A stretch of 64,000 bases of DNA from sequence record PV593634.1; one strand, given 5' to 3'. Position 1 is the first letter of the stretch. The number at the start of each line of letters is the position of its first letter. Below, piece after piece: positions 914 to 16,680 of this stretch. The notes beneath the pieces were generated by a model, which worked only from the letters and a program-made list of their open reading frames with translations, had not been told where the DNA came from and did no database searches. A program made the translations under genes and the position numbers.

Positions 914-3109
914 TTACTCAGCTGTGAGGCTATCTTCGTTGTAAGCTTCCAGGACCGAGTCCATCATGTAAACGCCTTTACCGAACCAGAGGCGTGTAAC
1001 AGCATACATAACAGATTTAGAAGTCGGAGAGTCTTCACGGAATGAAGTCTCAACTTCCCAGTTGGAGATTACAGAACCGAAGAGGTCGCGGATGCGCGCT
1101 TCAGCGTTATCTTTGACACGAGCCAGATAACCTTGACGTCCCAGCTGCGGATCACCAGAAACCTGGATCCACTGGTCTTGCAGAATCTTCTCAACGCATA
1201 CGCACTTCCAAACGTTGGTCAGATCTTTCAGCACACTGTTGATGTTGTCATAAACAGTCGGGAGTGCAGGACGGCAGAACTGAGATTCCGTGATCGGAGT
1301 AACAGTGATAGAACCGTTAATCAGGTTGTTAGCTGCCGGGTCATCTGCTTCGAACTCGATCTGAGGATCGTGAGCGATACGCAGGATACGGTTAGCATCG
1401 TGGTCTGGCATCATGGATGCGTACATCTTACCATCAGCACCACCACCGGCTACGGCGAATGCGTACATCAGGTCGATGTTCAGAGAGAAGCGTTCCCAGG
1501 TAGGTTCGTTAATATAACGAGCATCCCAAAGGTTAATAGCCGCACGGCAAGCCGCCGCTTTATAAACTTCTGATTCAGGGATCATCGTAATACGAGCATT
1601 CAACATGTTCGCAGTAGAATAGATCTCTTCCTGAGTTTTAGGACGCAGCCACTCAGTAGCGCACGGAACAACAATGATGTCTTTACGCTTAGACATGAAG
1701 TTAATCAGTACATCTTTAATGCGCTGATTATAACCAACGTCCCACATAAAGGAAGCACGGTTACGAATAACATCTTTAACAGCCAGGCTGTTCTGGTATT
1801 CGATCAAGTATGCTTCGATCAGCTGCTGGTTCATTTCCCAACACTGTTTGGTAGAAACAACAGCATCTGGGTTAGAGGTATCAACAACCCACGGACCGTC
1901 TACAGCAGGAACCCAAGAAGTCGGAGCATCTGGGTATTTACCATTTTCATCAGCAAACGGACTGATACCGCCGTTAGCTTGCAGGAAGTGGTTCAGGCTG
2001 ATACGGGTACCAGTCAGTTTATCAGCAACGTCGAAGTTACCACCAAAGATGATAGTCTTGTACGGTTTACCAACGTGGTTGACCAGGTCGAACATGTTCA
2101 TGATAGCGAATGCAGGCAGACGCTTATTCAGAACGGTCGGAGCCATTTCACCACCGGCTACGTATTCTGCATCATACAGTTCTTTAGCCACAGCGTTCAA
2201 GTTCTGAGTATACATGTGAACTGCATCGAACGGAGCATCAACAACTTCCACTGGACGGTTAACGTTGTTACCGGTGTACTGATCAACAGCACTACGCAGA
2301 GAGTAACGAACGTTGTTAGAGTCAACAGTATCGAACATAGTAAAGGTGGTATCCGGGGTACCATTTACAGTATTAGCCGGAACACGAAGACCATTGTCCA
2401 GAAGTGTACCAATGTTCAGGATGAACGGATACGCACCGTTCTGGGTAACGAAACGAGAAACTTCGTTCCAGTCAGTCATAGCGAGATGACCAATAGAAGC
2501 GTAGTTAGCGTTATAAACGTCACCGATACCACCAATGATTTCAGCCAGCGGATAGAACTTACCTGCGGTGTCCAGAGGGATGTCTGGAACAGAAGCGTCA
2601 GCTTTGGTTTCGAAGACTTTAGCTTCGCCAACTTTACCTTCTGATTTCAGAACACCTGGGCAAACCCACAGACCAGCGATGGTCGGAGTGGTGTCGTCAG
2701 GGATCGGGTTACCCGCATCATCAAGAGAGTAGCTACCATCAAGTTCACGTTTGTAGTTGGGGATATCACCTTTAAAGATTGTGACACCAACAATAGTACG
2801 AGCGTTTACTTTGTTATTGGTAAGACGTTTGAAGCGGAAAGAAGATTGCCCAGCAGCACCCAACTTGGAGATTGCATAAGTAACCGGGTTATAGAACATA
2901 CCGAACGCATCAGTGATGTCGCCGAACTTTTCATTAAAAGTCCCGACAGCCACCGTGCCAGCTTTGGTAGTTCCTTTCGGAGTTACCGCAGCGAAGTCCG
3001 GGAAGTGAGCAGGAGAAGAGATAACCGGTACACCGGCCGGGAATTGCTCCCGACTAACGATACCGTTATTTACCACTTTACCTGGAATCACTTTTGAAAA
3101 AGTATTCAT
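914..3109 (-). CDS. Tail sheath protein (phiKZ gp29-like)
   Basis: 731 aa, strong codon bias, sheath-like C-terminus (MPDHDANRILR...NLINGSITV); position between tube and the gp28/27/26-terminase block. Confidence 0.85.
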   Translation of the reverse strand: MNTFSKVIPGKVVNNGIVSREQFPAGVPVISSPAHFPDFAAVTPKGTTKAGTVAVGTFNEKFGDITDAFGMFYNPVTYAISKLGAAGQSSFRFKRLTNNKVNARTIVGVTIFKGDIPNYKRELDGSYSLDDAGNPIPDDTTPTIAGLWVCPGVLKSEGKVGEAKVFETKADASVPDIPLDTAGKFYPLAEIIGGIGDVYNANYASIGHLAMTDWNEVSRFVTQNGAYPFILNIGTLLDNGLRVPANTVNGTPDTTFTMFDTVDSNNVRYSLRSAVDQYTGNNVNRPVEVVDAPFDAVHMYTQNLNAVAKELYDAEYVAGGEMAPTVLNKRLPAFAIMNMFDLVNHVGKPYKTIIFGGNFDVADKLTGTRISLNHFLQANGGISPFADENGKYPDAPTSWVPAVDGPWVVDTSNPDAVVSTKQCWEMNQQLIEAYLIEYQNSLAVKDVIRNRASFMWDVGYNQRIKDVLINFMSKRKDIIVVPCATEWLRPKTQEEIYSTANMLNARITMIPESEVYKAAACRAAINLWDARYINEPTWERFSLNIDLMYAFAVAGGGADGKMYASMMPDHDANRILRIAHDPQIEFEADDPAANNLINGSITVTPITESQFCRPALPTVYDNINSVLKDLTNVWKCVCVEKILQDQWIQVSGDPQLGRQGYLARVKDNAEARIRDLFGSVISNWEVETSFREDSPTSKSVMYAVTRLWFGKGVYMMDSVLEAYNEDSLTAE

Positions 3110-3215
3110 AGTAAAACCTCATTAATTTTTTTGATCAAAAAAATCAATCGTATGACCCTAAATCGGGCATGACAGTTAACGTTAACACGCATAACATTAA
3201 TTCAGGACTACAGTT

Positions 3216-8786: not shown

Positions 8787-9296
8787 ATGAAAATGCAAGT
8801 TACTAAAGAAATGATCAAAGCTCTGGCCTCTCAGATTTTCATGAACCGTGAGATGATCGAAAAGTCAGATTGGTTTCTGATGGAAGAGTTCTTCATCGCC
8901 AAAGATATTGAGAGCGGTTTTAGTTCGTTTGCTTTATTCAAGGATAGTGCTAAACTCGGTAATATTCACAGCCTGGGTAGTGTTGAGCATATCCATGCGA
9001 CAATTACCACTATGTTTAACGATTATATCCGTGCTGAGGTTGAAGACGCAACCGAATACTTCCTGCGTTCTTATGGTACAAAACCGTTCATTCATAAGTT
9101 CCACGATTTGACACTGGCTCGTGGCCAAGCTGGTCGTAGCGGTCTCTACGCTAATGACACACTGACCAAAGGCGATCAGATCGTTTATCGTAAATGTATG
9201 TTGACCAAAGATCTGGATAAAGACATCCTTGAAATTGTCGTGCGTGATCAAATCCACACCCTGGTACTTGATGGTGTAATTACGATCGAAATCTAA
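8787..9296 (+). CDS. Hypothetical protein
   Basis: 169 aa, AAGGA RBS, own promoter motif and terminator. Confidence 0.7.
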   Translation: MKMQVTKEMIKALASQIFMNREMIEKSDWFLMEEFFIAKDIESGFSSFALFKDSAKLGNIHSLGSVEHIHATITTMFNDYIRAEVEDATEYFLRSYGTKPFIHKFHDLTLARGQAGRSGLYANDTLTKGDQIVYRKCMLTKDLDKDILEIVVRDQIHTLVLDGVITIEI

Positions 9297-9303
9297 ACAT
9301 AAC

Positions 9304-9332
9304 CCCTACCCCTCCTTTCGGAGTGGGTAGGG
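9304..9332. terminator. Terminator hairpin between convergent genes
   Basis: CCCTACCC...GGGTAGGG. Confidence 0.7.
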
Positions 9333-9356
9333 ATCTATGATCTTATTTATTTTCTT

Positions 9357-11681
9357 TTAGTAACGACGGAAGCCCATACGGTTTTGCTTAGAGCGTTGTT
9401 CTACCAAACGTTTACCGCGTTCTGCTTTAGCGTTCTCGATAACTTCGTCAATGGTAATTGTCTTACGCATTTCCTTAGGAATCAATTCAGACAGTTTACG
9501 GATCTCCATCTCAATACGAGCTGCCAGTGTATTGTTATCACTTGTTAGCAGTTCTTTAGTAAGTAGGTTGATACGTTCACGAATCTTAACGAACAACTGA
9601 AGCTGGTCTTTGTTGTACTTAGGAGCATCCCCATTATCACGAAGGGTTTTGATCTCAATAAGCGTTGCGCCTTGAGGGATGTTGTAACGGTCTTTATTGT
9701 AACCCATCTTAATAAACCAGTAGGTCAACAACCAAGCAATTACCAAGTCATCGTGTCCTCTTGAGCTGTGGTCAATACGACCATCCTTATCTACTTCCAA
9801 ACCAATCAGTTCATCGATCAACAGTTTGTAGCGAATACCTGCACCTGTTAGTGAAATAGCTTCGTGGATAAAACCATACATCTGACGACGAGATTCAGGA
9901 CCCGTGTGGAATCCGAACTTACCTTTATGACGAAGGTAGAACTCTTTAGTACGATGTTTAAAGCTCATCTCCATTACATCACGATATTCGTTAGCATACT
10001 TGATAGGTTTATCAAAGATATCGTTGAACAGTCGAGTGAATGGATCGATACCATACGCTGGCAGGATAATCAATAAACGTTCGATCATCATAGCAGCACG
10101 GTTTCGTTCAATGATCAACATCGAGTTACTAATCCGAATCAGGAGTTCCTTACAAACGTCCGTAACGTCATCCAGGAAGGCTAGCGCATATCGACCTGTA
10201 CCAATGACCTCACCTGACTTAAGACGTCGTATAACAAGCGTACAGGCATCTCGGTCGTTGGCGTCTGAGGTATCCATCCCGTAGAGTAGATATTCAGTTG
10301 GATCATCAATATAGACTTGCAGTTCTTCTTCTGAAATGAACCAGTCTACAAACAGGCCAGTATCTCCGATCTCTTCGTTTCGTAAGTGTTCTACTTTTGA
10401 CTCTGCTAGTTTCTCACGAGTAAAGTCATCGAACAGTTTGTTCATCCCTTCTTCAGTCCACATCATCAACAAGTCGATCTTAGCCTTAGACCAAGACAGA
10501 CCAAGTTTATCCATGGTCTCTTTAACCCAAGCATGACCAAAGCCAAGTTGAAGGTGGGTGAACATCATCCCGATTTTCGGGTGAGTGGTTTTAACAGGGG
10601 AAGCTTTCATGATACGCTGAACGAGGTGAGTCTCTGAATAACTATCAAAGAACTTCTCACGCCACTCAGTAGAGTTCATGAAGTCGTCGTGCATGTACTT
10701 ACCTTCCTCTTTTAACACGGAGTTAGGTGTAGTAGCTTTCGCTGTGAAATAAGGAATGCCTTTCTCACGCGCTTCCTTCTGTGCAGTCAGGGTCGCAGGA
10801 CCCGAACCGTTTATGATGTTCTCTATGTACTTAGTCCATGCAGGTTCATCGTACAACAGAACTTCGAAGGTTGAACCACGGCTGACGTTCTCTGCACCAT
10901 CCGCACCACCCGAAGGTACACGCACTTCAAAGGTGTTCTTCTTATCTTCACCAAAGGCTTGGTAGGTTAAGGCGTTACCAGCATCCTTATCCTTGTAAGT
11001 CATGTTGGTTAGGTATTCAGGTAAACCAGCACGGATCTTCTTCAGAGCTTCAACGAACTGCATACGGTTAGCTGCAGCAAGTGTAATCAGACCAGTACGG
11101 AAACCACGACCTAACAGATACTGCATGATAAATGCAAGTACCTGCATCCCTACAGTTTTACCAGATTGACGCGGCATCAGGATAGTAGTTGGGATATGGT
11201 TAACGCAAGACCAGATGAAAGAGATAACAGCACGGTTACCACGGAAGCGACGACCACCGATCTTGATTACTTCACGGAGAATGTACCAGATGTTTTCGTT
11301 ACATTCGTTCAGGATCATCATCCGCTGTTCATCGGTTAGATCTTCAGACCAAGGATCGAGATCTTTAATCAACGGGTTGTTGATTTGCAGAAGGAAGTAA
11401 TAGTTCTTAATTCCCATCTGTCTAAACAGTTCAGCAGTACGGAGGAAAGACTTGTTAGTCGTCTCGGTATGAACACCAGCACCATAGCGAGAGAAGTCTT
11501 TAAGGAAACGTACAGTCTTAAGAGTCCAAAGGGAATCTTCCTCATAGTGAGCTTCGATACGATGATCGTCTTCATCTAAAGGAGTGCGTTCGTTCTTGTC
11601 ATCCATCAGGAACTTAGGTAAACTGCCAGCTTTCCATCCCTGGTGTTGTAGGATCTTCTTGGCGATCTCTAAATTACTCAT
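9357..11681 (-). CDS. terL: Terminase large subunit
   Basis: 774 aa; Walker A PRQSGKT, Walker B LLYDE, nuclease GMDTSD and HDDLVIA. Confidence 0.92.
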   Translation of the reverse strand: MSNLEIAKKILQHQGWKAGSLPKFLMDDKNERTPLDEDDHRIEAHYEEDSLWTLKTVRFLKDFSRYGAGVHTETTNKSFLRTAELFRQMGIKNYYFLLQINNPLIKDLDPWSEDLTDEQRMMILNECNENIWYILREVIKIGGRRFRGNRAVISFIWSCVNHIPTTILMPRQSGKTVGMQVLAFIMQYLLGRGFRTGLITLAAANRMQFVEALKKIRAGLPEYLTNMTYKDKDAGNALTYQAFGEDKKNTFEVRVPSGGADGAENVSRGSTFEVLLYDEPAWTKYIENIINGSGPATLTAQKEAREKGIPYFTAKATTPNSVLKEEGKYMHDDFMNSTEWREKFFDSYSETHLVQRIMKASPVKTTHPKIGMMFTHLQLGFGHAWVKETMDKLGLSWSKAKIDLLMMWTEEGMNKLFDDFTREKLAESKVEHLRNEEIGDTGLFVDWFISEEELQVYIDDPTEYLLYGMDTSDANDRDACTLVIRRLKSGEVIGTGRYALAFLDDVTDVCKELLIRISNSMLIIERNRAAMMIERLLIILPAYGIDPFTRLFNDIFDKPIKYANEYRDVMEMSFKHRTKEFYLRHKGKFGFHTGPESRRQMYGFIHEAISLTGAGIRYKLLIDELIGLEVDKDGRIDHSSRGHDDLVIAWLLTYWFIKMGYNKDRYNIPQGATLIEIKTLRDNGDAPKYNKDQLQLFVKIRERINLLTKELLTSDNNTLAARIEMEIRKLSELIPKEMRKTITIDEVIENAKAERGKRLVEQRSKQNRMGFRRY

Positions 11682-11773
11682 TCGCGTAATTACCTTGTCA
11701 AATAGTTAATCGCAGCACAGAGGCTTACAGGAGGTTTAATAACAAACTATTCATTTGAATAAGGAATCGGACA

Positions 11774-11790
11774 TATATCATTAAAGTGTA
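11774..11790 (+). promoter_or_regulatory. Phage promoter-like motif (variant)
   Basis: TATATCATTAAAGTGTA. Confidence 0.55.
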
Positions 11791-11833
11791 AGTACAATAA
11801 TGTATTACATAACCTAATTTAGAGGGCTTTAAT

Positions 11834-12277
11834 ATGACTACTTTTACTAACGAGTTCAAAGACAACTTGGCAGCCATCACCGGGAACGGTACTCTAATTA
11901 AGTTGGATGTGGTTGACCCAAATGTGGAAGAACGCAGACTGGGTCTGGTCCGTGAATATGGGTACGACAAAGATCGTTTCGATGCGGCTTTGTTTATCTA
12001 TATCTGTAACGTGCTGGATGACCATGGATTAGCTAATAAATATCCAATGGGTCGTGAAGTAATTATTGCAACTACAGCTAAGTCTGTAGTGGATTGGTTC
12101 AATAGCGGTAAGCTGTTGGTGAATACCGGTTATAGCTTATCCATGTATATCGCTAGTCGCGTTGGACCGACATGGTTGGACGAAGGCAAATGTCCTTCTT
12201 CTGAGACTATTGAATTGATCGAGAAAGATATGGACCGTGTGTTCAGTGTCTGGCATGATCGCATGTTCGATTTTTAA
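11834..12277 (+). CDS. Hypothetical protein
   Basis: 147 aa with RBS, promoter motif and terminator. Confidence 0.7.
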   Translation: MTTFTNEFKDNLAAITGNGTLIKLDVVDPNVEERRLGLVREYGYDKDRFDAALFIYICNVLDDHGLANKYPMGREVIIATTAKSVVDWFNSGKLLVNTGYSLSMYIASRVGPTWLDEGKCPSSETIELIEKDMDRVFSVWHDRMFDF

Positions 12278-12935: not shown

Positions 12936-14401
12936 TATCTATAAGCTTCCATTGTTAAGGTTCTCAAAACAATGTAGAGCATCAGGCTAGTACGAAGAGA
13001 AGTAATCTTAATCTCCGTCTTAATACCTGTCATTACCTTCACGATCTCGTCACCATTAACACGCAGCTTATGTAGCAGTGCGTTGGTGGATTTACTTGAA
13101 GTATAAGCTCCACGTATTTTGAAGAACACGTTTTTGATGTCATCTGACCGAATGTTGTTAGTTGCCAAATACTCGAACATGTGCGTGGTTACGTCATCAA
13201 CGAACTCCCGGTAGCTATCACCTTTAGGGTGAGCCCATTGAGCAGGGAAGTCTCGGAGGATCATATCCAGTTTATCAGCATCTGTACGAGGAATAGCTTT
13301 AGCAGCATAAGTTGCAAGCTCCTGTTTAAAGAAACTGTTTTTGTCTGCTAACACAACACCGATATAGTTCTTGTAACGGTTAACGTGTTTCTGAACATCT
13401 TTGATATTCAGTTCGCCATCAAGCATTGCAAGACCAGAATCAGTCTCAACCAAATCAACGGAGTCTTTAACTTCGTACAACACTTTGGTATAGTCGTTGA
13501 TTACACCTTTAAGACGTGACTCCATGTCGTTCACCATGTAAACGATTTTCTTGTCATTATCCATCTTAGCAAATGTATCGAAGTGAATGCCTTTATTGCG
13601 GTCAATGATAAACTCACCACGAGCACGGAACAAGGCGTTCCATGAACCATAACGTTTGATATCAAACTTAAGGGACAGTTTGTTATACGTCGTAATAGCC
13701 ACGTTCTGTTTTACCAGGTAACCGAAGTAATGGTTCATGATCGAGGTCATGATGCGGTAGTGGAACAACATAACCAGGTTGATCAACGCATCTTCTTTCA
13801 ACTGCGGTGGTAACTCGGCCACTTGAACACGGTGCATCAAGTAAACGATAGCCAGGTTGAATGCTGAGGAAGATACTTTAAAGTCTTTGTTGATCCATTT
13901 GGTTTTGATCAACTCGTCACGTAAACGAACTTCGTCAACATCGATAATGTCACGGAAGAAAGTAACACGATCAGATGTTTTAAATAGAATGCGGTGAGTT
14001 CCTAAATAAGGAGAACCGAAGAACTCTGTATGATCGTTATCTTTGGTGGCGAAACCGTAGACGTAACGTTTGAGTGTTTGCACCCAACGTGGTGTGATCT
14101 CCAGATCATCAACCATCTGATCAAAGATATCCTTGACAGCATTGTCACGGTTATAATTGAAGTTAGGTTGCAGAGCTTCAAAGCCCGCCATATACTCAAG
14201 GTTCTGAGTATAGGACTCAAGGCCACCAAACTGGTTAAGAGCAACTTCAGGACCAAACAAGGTCCAAGGTTGATCTCGTGACTCCATACCTGCTAGGAGT
14301 GCTCTCAGTTCGTTATCTGACAACTGTTGCTCATCGTACTCGTCTTGCGATGTAGGAACAAAACTTTGACGAATAGAGAGCGCGGCTTGGTTAAGATTCA
14401 T
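12935..14401 (-). CDS. Virion (probably head) protein with acidic propeptide
   Basis: 488 aa; N-terminus carries AGME/S, GGLE/S and AGFE/A motifs. Confidence 0.6.
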   Translation of the reverse strand: MNLNQAALSIRQSFVPTSQDEYDEQQLSDNELRALLAGMESRDQPWTLFGPEVALNQFGGLESYTQNLEYMAGFEALQPNFNYNRDNAVKDIFDQMVDDLEITPRWVQTLKRYVYGFATKDNDHTEFFGSPYLGTHRILFKTSDRVTFFRDIIDVDEVRLRDELIKTKWINKDFKVSSSAFNLAIVYLMHRVQVAELPPQLKEDALINLVMLFHYRIMTSIMNHYFGYLVKQNVAITTYNKLSLKFDIKRYGSWNALFRARGEFIIDRNKGIHFDTFAKMDNDKKIVYMVNDMESRLKGVINDYTKVLYEVKDSVDLVETDSGLAMLDGELNIKDVQKHVNRYKNYIGVVLADKNSFFKQELATYAAKAIPRTDADKLDMILRDFPAQWAHPKGDSYREFVDDVTTHMFEYLATNNIRSDDIKNVFFKIRGAYTSSKSTNALLHKLRVNGDEIVKVMTGIKTEIKITSLRTSLMLYIVLRTLTMEAYR

Positions 14402-15246
14402 TAGCGTTTCCTTGGAACGGTCATCTTGATAGAATCTGCTTTACCCTTAGGATCAGCATAAGCAAGATATTTCTTCATCTCGGTGTTAAACATATCTTTG
14501 AATTCACGGTGGGCATCCGCGTATCCTTGGATATCGTCTTGAACATCTTCAACCGTTACACCAAAGCGAGATACCGCTTCTTGCATACCACGTCTGCAAG
14601 TCTTATAGATATAAGCTTTAACACCTAACTCTACAAGCTCAGCAAACTTGTCATACATCTTGGGTGGGATTATGGAGAAGTGTTCGTCATAGGACAAAAC
14701 AACTTTAGCGATCATATTAAACATGGCTGAACCAGCATCACGAATAATGAAGGAGTTATTCCCCGTCATTGTGAAACTAGTAAATGAACGCTGTACCTGT
14801 CCATCATCTAAACCATTGATCAAGCGGTTCATACTACCGGTCATTGAACTACTGCCACAAGTTGCGTAGTTGTTGAAGTTGTAACCGTTGTTAATAGCCC
14901 GATTAATATTTCCAGGATAGACTTCTATTACCTGGATAATACGGCGACCGCCAGTCATAAAGTCTGGAACGTTAACTGCAATGATACCGCCTTGCAGGTT
15001 TTCAATATTGGCAGCGCTAAGATCAATAATCTCAGTTGTACCACCAGCGACGTTCAGCAAAGGCCCTACCATCTTCATGATGACCTTTTCACGAATACCT
15101 TGTTCAATTGTGAACTCATCATTCACAGGAGCCCAAATGGACCCATAGCCGTTATTTGGATTGTTAAAGGCTAACTTGAGTAAGTATTCCGAAATATCAG
15201 TAGGTCCGTTGATAACGTACTCAATTGAGAAATCAACTGGATTCAT
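14401..15246 (-). CDS. Conserved hypothetical, probably virion protein
   Basis: 281 aa, GAGG RBS, translationally coupled to the next gene. Confidence 0.6.
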   Translation of the reverse strand: MNPVDFSIEYVINGPTDISEYLLKLAFNNPNNGYGSIWAPVNDEFTIEQGIREKVIMKMVGPLLNVAGGTTEIIDLSAANIENLQGGIIAVNVPDFMTGGRRIIQVIEVYPGNINRAINNGYNFNNYATCGSSSMTGSMNRLINGLDDGQVQRSFTSFTMTGNNSFIIRDAGSAMFNMIAKVVLSYDEHFSIIPPKMYDKFAELVELGVKAYIYKTCRRGMQEAVSRFGVTVEDVQDDIQGYADAHREFKDMFNTEMKKYLAYADPKGKADSIKMTVPRKR

Positions 15247-15296
15247 AATAACCTCTTTTATAATGGAATTACAAAAGATCGAAGTACAGACATAAA

Positions 15297-15325
15297 CCCC
15301 TACCCCTCCGAAGAGAAGGTAGGGG
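15297..15325 (-). terminator. Intrinsic terminator
   Basis: CCCCTACC...GGTAGGGG; minus strand continues into TTTATG. Confidence 0.75.
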
Positions 15326-15333
15326 ATATGCTT

Positions 15334-15436
15334 GTCGGGTAAGGCAGGACGGTTTCAGGCATGAATGGCAGACACACCTGAATCCCCGTTTCGTCCATTT
15401 GTTTTAGTTCGCAGGACTCGTCAGCTGTTACGAACA
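15334..15436 (-). ncRNA. Type I hammerhead ribozyme
   Basis: Minus strand: CAG CUGACGA GUCC-17 nt loop-GGAC GAAA CGG-hairpin-CCG UC^ CUG. All core nucleotides and stems I-III are present. Confidence 0.88.
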
Positions 15437-16037
15437 CCTCTCTCTCACCAGGGTAGAGATTTGGTAGGTCCTCAGATATCGCATCGCTAATCACGTTAGC
15501 TAATAGGCATTTGGAGTATCAGGACTCCGCCTTGAGTTATGCTTTCGTTCTGAAGGACCAATGGATGTATCCTCACAACCTCAGACACTAGACTCGATTC
15601 ACGTAAGTGTTTAATTTTGGTCTCGGCCGTGTCGGTAGCAAGGATACTGAAGGGATGCAACGTTCCCAAGTAAGATAGATATTGTTTCGCTTCGGCCCAG
15701 GATGGAGTTCGGGTTCTACCATCATCGATAACCCGACGAGCGCCGTCGGAGAGTGCATTCAGCTTATGCTACTGGACATTCTATCAAACGCGTTGCTAAG
15801 CGCCAACGGATTCCGAAGGCACCATCCACCAGGGCTGTTTCGTACCTGACCCATGAGTCAGAATACCAGTCACCTGGATTTAGTTCCCTGGAAGCTGCGA
15901 TTCCTCCAGGGATTTAGCCCTCAACTTTACGCCGGTCTTCGCCAGCAGGCTGAGGGTCTTACGAACCCATTGTGTTGACTGGTGAATCCGAGTTAAGAGT
16001 CCTTAGTCGTTAAGACTTACTGCCCATTAACCCCGAC
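15334..16037 (-). ncRNA. Large structured non-coding RNA (about 700 nt), family not recognised
   Basis: No credible ORF; 5' and 3' ends complementary; many hairpins and long-range helices; G-U pairs favour the minus strand. Confidence 0.75.
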
Positions 16038-16064
16038 GCACACTTCCCAACAGTTTGGGTCTAA

Positions 16065-16460
16065 CTATGATCCGTAATCGAGTTTTACGAATCTACCTTT
16101 ATAGTAGCCAAAGTTTTCAGGCTTTGCATCGCTTCTATAAAAGTCAGGAGAGATTGTGGTTAAAGATGGTGACAACGCACAGAGTCTTTCTAGCTCAACG
16201 AAGTATAGTCCTCTGTTATTAACAGGGGCGCAACGTCTCATCACTATGAACAATCCAGTACGTGTTCCCATAACCGACGGACACAGATGTGAATCAGGTC
16301 TATCAGCTATTCCTCTCCATTTCCATTCAGTAATATTAGCTAGCAGTCCTTGTAGGAAATGTTCCCAACTGTAGAACGACGGTAGTTTAATAGCGTACCG
16401 TTTCGTCAATATCACTAACCTGGTGGCGCCTTTTCTGTTAACCTTGATATTGGGCAACAT
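16065..16460 (-). CDS. Minimal protein-kinase-like fold protein
   Basis: 131 aa; GATRLV, YAIK (VAIK-like), DAKPEN (DxKxxN), KLDYG (DFG-like). Confidence 0.65.
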   Translation of the reverse strand: MLPNIKVNRKGATRLVILTKRYAIKLPSFYSWEHFLQGLLANITEWKWRGIADRPDSHLCPSVMGTRTGLFIVMRRCAPVNNRGLYFVELERLCALSPSLTTISPDFYRSDAKPENFGYYKGRFVKLDYGS

Positions 16461-16680
16461 GAGGCATCAGTGCAGACCAACCGCCGACGTGTTTATCGTC
16501 AACAAAGATCTGTGGAACTTCGCGAACCATAGTGCCACAAATTTCACCGAGCTTAACAGCATCGATACCTTGCTCAACGATGTCGATGTATTCAACTTCG
16601 ATAGCAGGTTTTGTGGCACACAGGTTTTTAGCTTTAACACAGTTAGGGCAATTCGGTTTGCCGTAAATCGTTACTTTCAT
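16438..16680 (-). CDS. grx: Glutaredoxin
   Basis: 80 aa; CPNC, VPQIFVDDKHVGG. Confidence 0.9.
   Translation of the reverse strand: MKVTIYGKPNCPNCVKAKNLCATKPAIEVEYIDIVEQGIDAVKLGEICGTMVREVPQIFVDDKHVGGWSALMPHVAQYQG

Follow-up and report, generated by a model that had tools for sequence, protein, structure and literature searches.

We found that the minus strand of Shewanella phage SXP01 carries a type I hammerhead ribozyme at positions 15435–15345 of the 64,000-nt stretch of its genome analysed here (the window). Comparison with relatives confirms the ribozyme as an evolutionarily conserved element, and its self-cleavage is predicted. We consider it likely that the hammerhead is active in cis, forms the last domain of a large phage RNA and matures the 3′ end of that RNA. 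The roles of bacterial and phage hammerheads are mostly unknown, and the context described here suggests a concrete job, namely the setting of a 3′ end and, in relatives of SXP01, the splitting of two RNAs.

The ribozyme lies in an 818-nt gap (15247–16064) that matches SXP01 (PV593634.1) with 100% identity and in which the GenBank record annotates no feature. SXP01 is a jumbo phage with a genome of 269.9 kb; we take it and its relatives to belong to the phiKZ-related, nucleus-forming group, an assumption based on phages OBP and EL and on protein similarity. The genes around the gap are all on the minus strand. Upstream are tRNA-Asn, tRNA-Ser and tRNA-Cys (17891–16861, identified with Rfam), a glutaredoxin of 80 aa (16441–16680; Pfam E = 1.5e-10) and an unannotated ORF of 131 aa (16065–16460), and downstream is a gene for a DUF7484 virion protein (14401–15246), followed by further structural genes. 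The GenBank features of SXP01 lack the three tRNA genes (Cys, Ser and Asn) and the 131-aa ORF, and the 80-aa glutaredoxin is labelled there as a 'putative virion structural protein'.

The hammerhead has the type I topology, with an open stem I, stems II and III capped by loops, and a complete catalytic core. Stem I pairs CAG (15427–15425) with CUG (15347–15345), and all three of its pairs covary, the variants among relatives being CAG/CUG, UAU/AUA, CAU/AUG and (A)CC/GG(U). An extension of stem I (GUAA/UUAC) is possible by sequence and, unlike the loop II pseudoknot described below, is not conserved. The core segment C3–A9, CUGACGA, occupies 15424–15418; CUGA-N-GA is invariant in 13 of 13 sequences, and N7 (C, U or A) is the sole variable position of the core. 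Stem II is formed by GUCC (15417–15414) and GGAC (15396–15393), three of its pairs being invariant and the fourth covarying between CG and UA. Within it (15393–15417) is a 17-nt loop, in which the pseudoknot strand GCGAAC is followed by an A-rich linker (UAAAACAAAU in SXP01) that is conserved in all members of the family. The residues G12, A13 and A14 together with A15.1 are the GAAA at 15392–15389, where GACGAAACGGG is invariant in all members. In hammerhead numbering, the G10.1–C11.1 pair that closes stem II is G15417–C15393, the A15.1–U16.1 pair is A15389–U15349, and C17 is C15348. The structural features that define the type I class are all present: the core, the A15.1–U16.1 pair, an H17 that is not G, the stem II closing pair and the three-helix junction. 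A preliminary description of this DNA had called the element a complete type I hammerhead, and every part that it named is found on the minus strand where it was placed, with an invariant core and a covarying stem I.

The sequence CCGUC at the cleavage site is invariant in all members, its GUC being 15350–15348 in SXP01. The predicted scissile bond is between 15348 and 15347, that is, 3′ of C17 and 5′ of C1.1; hammerhead numbering thus leads to the same position that the preliminary description had derived from the GUC triplet. The minimum-free-energy fold of the single sequence does not recover the hammerhead (z-score = −0.9), which is expected because the fold is pseudoknotted, and we do not count it as support. 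The GUC of stem II, the CGGG/CCG of stem III and loop III are more conserved than catalysis alone needs, and this excess of conservation outside the core hints at an additional role.

The loop II strand GCGAAC (15412–15407) is complementary, with one G–U pair, to the tail GUUCGU (15435–15430) just 5′ of stem I. This pseudoknot had been predicted from the single sequence and is upheld by covariation, four of its six pairs showing double changes and 97% of cells being paired (11–12 phages), whereas sliding the partner by 1–3 columns as a control left 17–64% paired. The variants include GUUCG/CGAAC, UGUCG/CGACA, CAUCG/CGAUG, CGUCG/CGACG and CCCG/CGGG. Directly 5′ of the tail there is a small hairpin (15442–15458, minus strand; helix 20 of the consensus structure described below), in which three of four pairs show double changes. 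In the proposed mechanism, the 6-bp pairing of loop II with the 5′ tail would stabilise the hammerhead.

The pseudoknot brace is not a new feature, as pseudoknots of this general kind occur in ~40% of hammerheads, and stem I–stem II pseudoknots were found experimentally to be needed for fast cleavage in other hammerheads (PMC3088659). The SXP01 ribozyme resembles the pseudoknotted type I hammerheads (Perreault et al. 2011, PMC3088659; RF00163) in its core, three-way junction and open stem I, in the tail beside stem I that pairs with loop II over ~6 bp, and in its phage intergenic setting. It also shares a 6-bp pseudoknot brace, and an A-rich strand available for groove lining, with the pistol-like pseudoknot hammerhead of solved structure (PMC11300833). 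The pistol-like form has a pseudoknot in place of helix II, made with the loop of an additional hairpin carried on helix I, whereas all members of the SXP01 family have a canonical stem II of 3–4 bp (4 bp in SXP01), and their loop II pairs with a single-stranded 5′ tail. We considered assignment to the pistol-like class and rejected it, since stem II is kept and the partner is not a hairpin loop.

Stem III (15349–15388; U16.1 at 15349) is a helix in three parts that ends in a conserved loop. Its base helix, CGG/CCG (15388–15386 with 15352–15350), is invariant and is followed by an internal loop, GGA/A, and by a 10-bp extension, UUCAGGUGUG/CAUGCCUGAA (15382–15373 with 15363–15354), closed by the loop UCUGCCAUU (15372–15364). 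The extension of CGG/CCG by UUCAGG/CCUGAA noted earlier is therefore present and in fact runs on as part of this longer helix. The two outer segments of stem III covary, with double changes at six of six and three of four pairs, and the loop of the relatives has the conserved form (A/U)(C/U)UCCA(G/A). Relative to the pseudoknotted type I hammerheads (PMC3088659; RF00163), the SXP01 family is set apart by this stem III of ~40 nt, with three covarying segments and a conserved terminal loop, by its score below the Rfam gathering threshold, and by its place in every case at the 3′ end of a single, specific large structured RNA. The unusual points are the length and three-part make-up of stem III with its conserved loop, the low Rfam score and, most of all, this unvarying link with a large unclassified RNA.

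That the loop of stem III is conserved while its stem covaries freely would fit a form of conditional cleavage, in which loop III or the tail pairs with the large RNA, with another copy or with a factor and so provides a folding checkpoint or switch. An 8-nt complementarity exists between loop III of SXP01 (UCUGCCAU) and AUGGUAGA (~15721–15714, minus strand), which is part of the best-conserved hairpin in the central domain of the large RNA. In the AH04-like group, a UGGAGU ~90 nt upstream matches the loop ACUCCA. However, a search for a partner of the loop across the members gave no single site complementary in all of them, and the candidate sites are already paired in the consensus structure. 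Relatives with the loop CUCCA can pair at the site equivalent to AUGGUAGA only with a bulge, and some are unable to pair there. Since there is no universal and unpaired partner, the complementarity is at chance level for some members, and we regard conditional cleavage as quite improbable.

At gathering thresholds, Rfam reports only the three tRNAs in the whole window. A search with the Rfam hammerhead models, proposed earlier as a check, fell short of the threshold: Hammerhead_1 (RF00163) matches the core and stem II of the SXP01 site but scores 16.5 bits (E = 1.1), below its gathering score of 34. The type I model of Rfam registers in two members only, both sub-threshold, the best being locus L010 at 23.7 bits. 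In the Rfam alignment, the core, stem II and GAAAC match perfectly, and the 4-bp stem III of the model is forced onto the start of the ~40-nt stem III. The low score thus results from an insertion of ~36 nt in stem III and not from a defect of the core.

A covariance model built from 12 relatives with SXP01 left out (R2) scored 68 bits (E = 1.1e-16) at 15343–15438 (minus strand) in the 64-kb window, the runner-up reaching 13 bits, and the hammerhead family model gives 74–102 bits on every member. In alignments with the tail and loop II in register, pairing holds in 96.7–97.1% of cells, and 8 of 17 pairs have changed on both sides. None of 500 shuffles comes as high, although such shuffle controls overstate significance for a family of few and related members. 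The low Rfam score could be taken to mean that the fold is a non-cleaving structural domain of the large RNA, or a motif that arose by chance. Against this, every catalytic nucleotide is invariant in the 13 sequences, even though the flanking protein has diverged to 74% identity, while N7 and all stem I pairs vary freely. Such fixation of the catalytic nucleotides, with N7 and stem I free to change, is the signature of selection on catalysis. A chance motif is excluded by the leave-one-out score, and we consider a non-cleaving or accidental fold very unlikely.

The hammerhead and the large RNA occur together in 13 sequences, from eight isolated phages, four uncultivated viral genomes of 261–271 kb and one short metagenome contig; 12 of the 13, those that can be placed, are jumbo phages (OBP/pEt-SU/N1M2-like). 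The isolated relatives include N1M2, Sureiya, pEt-SU, Kc263, Survivor, OBP and AH04. Matches to the gap at the DNA level came from Klebsiella phage N1M2, Serratia phages Sureiya and Yubaba, Edwardsiella phage pEt-SU, Kosakonia phage Kc263 and Pantoea phage Survivor, each at the same site, with the tRNA/glutaredoxin cluster on one side and the DUF7484 gene on the other. A search with the DUF7484 protein added Pseudomonas phage OBP, Erwinia phage AH04 and three uncultivated viral genomes of 264–271 kb, and a scan with the hammerhead pattern added a viral genome of 261 kb (L020) and a metagenome contig (L038). The position of the ribozyme is constant, after the large RNA and before the DUF7484 virion protein gene. 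In the syntenic gaps of six more distant phages (Aeromonas phages pAEv1810, PS1, D6, CF8 and ZPAH34, and Pseudomonas phage EL), we detected no hammerhead of this family, no large RNA and no other Rfam ribozyme.

Upstream of the ribozyme, the body of the large RNA covers ~620 nt (15437–16058, minus strand), its 5′ end being approximate only, and shows covariation and no conserved ORF. This region aligns end to end with five relatives and more loosely with others. The fold predicted by RNAalifold has 122 pairs in 20 helices, and among these are long-range helices by which the central and 3′ domains are closed. In the consensus structure the 5′ domain spans 16051–15974, the central domain is closed by a long-range helix (15832–15822 with 15568–15558), and the 3′ domain spans 15555–15470, all on the minus strand. 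Pairing holds in 93% of the cells of the alignment, and double changes are seen at 48 pairs, compared with 21±3 in shuffles and 8–14 in slid controls, a comparison that favours the structure somewhat because the structure was derived from the same alignment. Conservation is highest in GUAGCAUAAGCUGAAUGCA and in a hairpin with the loop UAGAACCCGAA. A tRNA closely precedes the large RNA in N1M2, Sureiya and the metagenome contig L038, ending ~10–20 nt before it. We regard the ~620-nt body as a candidate new large structured RNA.

Several other identities for the gap were considered. A protein-coding gap was rejected, as the longest stop-free stretches vary in strand, frame and place between phages. 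Two annotated 'hypothetical proteins' overlie the large RNA or the hammerhead in relatives, at 2264–2776 of locus L001 (N1M2_252) and at 2924–3115 of locus L004 (QYN80068.1, phage Kc263); one of them is on the opposite strand, both are without a conserved counterpart in other phages, and they are probably spurious. Besides tRNA and the weak Hammerhead_1 match, Rfam 15 found no family in the SXP01 gap (E ≤ 10) or in 18 related loci (E ≤ 1); introns of group I or II, RNase P, tmRNA, GOLLD, ROOL and further ribozymes were all missing. A resemblance to RNase P or a group I intron, seen by eye, was dropped, there being no model support and the predicted pairings being different. A scan for a motif of the 5′ domain returned 52 viral stretches; the RNA profile matched none of 50 new loci, and these were set aside as chance matches. 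Our search of the literature found no description of the large RNA, or of a hammerhead, in these phages.

The preliminary description had also called the hammerhead the 3′ module of a much larger RNA directly before a terminator. The first part of this claim stands: the ribozyme is the last module of the 818-nt gap, which is free of ORFs and begins with the conserved multi-domain RNA. The second part holds for SXP01, in which a terminator-like hairpin and U-run begin 22 nt after the predicted cut, but not for most relatives, in which a module of ~250 nt intervenes. The hairpin of SXP01, CCCCUACCUUCUC-UUCG-GAGGGGUAGGGG (15325–15297, minus strand; −24.4 kcal/mol, z = −3.4), is followed by UUUAUGU to 15294 and is conserved in sequence in all aligned relatives. 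An intrinsic terminator has a GC-rich hairpin with a U-run directly behind it; here (15325–15294) the hairpin is strong, the U-run is short and a simple terminator scan gave no call. The sequence of the hairpin and of the following GGGGUUUAUGU(C/U)UG (15285–15325, minus strand) is kept from genus to genus, as is seldom the case for an ordinary terminator. A TATG motif is part of the late promoters used by phiKZ-type phage polymerases, and this stretch may double as a promoter of the virion genes.

The intervening module (module 2) is a conserved structured RNA of ~250 nt with covarying helices. In nine relatives it lies between the cleavage site and the hairpin and starts exactly at the cleavage site of the hammerhead, as in loci L001 (2989–3232), L002 (2943–3188), L004 (3030–3311), L012 (3173–3410) and L013 (3083–3343). 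Module 2 is absent from the whole SXP01 window and likewise from pEt-SU and Survivor. The SXP01 segment 15344–15335 (GCCUUACCCG) may be a remnant of the first hairpin loop of module 2 (GCCUUAACCG). The DUF7484 protein of SXP01 is closest to those of the module-bearing N1M2 and Sureiya (91% identity) and farther from those of pEt-SU and Survivor (74–76%), which suggests that module 2 was probably lost twice, with the ribozyme and the hairpin kept each time. Such retention would tie the value of the ribozyme to the RNA upstream of it.

These observations lead us to the following model. Transcription of the minus strand would yield the large RNA at the same time as the tRNA/glutaredoxin cluster or shortly afterwards, and the folded ribozyme would cut between C15348 and C15347. 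By the type I topology and established hammerhead chemistry, the 5′ product of ~710 nt (~16058 to 15348) should retain nearly the whole ribozyme and end in a 2′,3′-cyclic phosphate right after stem III. The 3′ fragment would carry a 5′-OH and, held by only three base pairs, would dissociate; it would comprise 22 nt and the terminator hairpin in SXP01, and the ~250-nt structured RNA and the terminator in most relatives. The ribozyme would thus act as an RNA-processing device that makes a precise, protein-independent 3′ end from which the terminator has been removed. In relatives with module 2, cleavage would split two non-coding RNAs of one transcript, and in N1M2, Sureiya and L038 the 5′ end could come from tRNA processing and the 3′ end from the ribozyme. 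The new 3′ end may shield the RNA from 3′ exonucleases or tailing, or may give it the exact terminus that its folding or assembly requires. In SXP01, a 3′ end is already supplied by the terminator 22 nt downstream, and the benefit of a second end-forming device in this phage is thus something we infer.

Cleavage could instead serve the genes downstream. On read-through of the hairpin into the virion genes (14401–15246 and beyond), it would free the mRNA of the bulky RNA and leave a 5′-OH end with altered stability or translation. The ribozyme, the terminator and the virion genes share a strand, with ~50 nt from the terminator to the start codon, and hammerheads that flank genes in polycistronic bacterial and prophage transcripts have been documented (PMC3088659). 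Yet the strong, sequence-conserved terminator-like hairpin separates the ribozyme from the gene in every member, and in nine relatives the 250-nt structured RNA would stay on the mRNA, so that such insulation would be incomplete. We therefore consider this role unlikely and prefer the maturation of the large RNA.

In its size of several hundred nucleotides, its multiple domains, its phage origin and its place beside a tRNA island, the upstream RNA resembles GOLLD and ROOL, and the large RNA of N1M2 and Sureiya directly follows a tRNA-Met, as in GOLLD env-38 (PMC12286853). It differs from GOLLD and ROOL in having no Rfam match at E ≤ 10, in its sequence and predicted structure, and in its hosts, which are jumbo phages of Gammaproteobacteria. 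Our search of the literature found no description of GOLLD or ROOL with a self-cleaving ribozyme. Another parallel is offered by the theta ribozymes, minimal HDV-like ribozymes located beside phage tRNAs (PMC10879173): in both cases a tailed phage would use a small self-cleaving ribozyme to define where a non-coding RNA ends inside a longer transcript. Those ribozymes cut at their own 5′ edge, free the 3′ end of the upstream tRNA and do not stay attached, whereas the hammerhead belongs to a different class and, being of type I, would remain on the upstream RNA.

A bolder version of the maturation model, which we hold to be plausible though a little short of probable, is that the hammerhead is the obligatory maturation domain of an undescribed class of ornate RNAs of ~700 nt, made by tRNA processing at the 5′ end and by self-cleavage at the 3′ end. 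The product would be stable, would carry a cyclic phosphate at its 3′ end and would be a counterpart of the GOLLD and ROOL RNAs of smaller phages, with loop III as part of a higher-order fold or assembly. The ribozyme in any case flags a covariation-supported RNA of ~700 nt that is absent from Rfam 15 and lies near a jumbo-phage tRNA island, the kind of neighbourhood shared with GOLLD and ROOL, whose functions are likewise unsolved. With an end set by a ribozyme, the mature RNA would also be straightforward to predict, to make and to investigate by cryo-EM, Northern blot or phage genetics.

The scan with the hammerhead pattern gave 7 viral, 14 metagenome and 4 genome loci in total. Among these, only L020, L038 and L039 newly carry the large RNA, L039 apparently duplicating L011; the others are previously found family members, unrelated hammerheads or weak matches. 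One locus is an unrelated, high-GC viral contig of 17.5 kb (L021, IMGVR_UViG_3300045136_000538), in which four hammerhead-like matches (19–29 bits with model R1) lie on one strand within 3.3 kb (8868–12206). Multi-hammerhead arrangements have been described in prophages, and the pattern on this contig resembles them.
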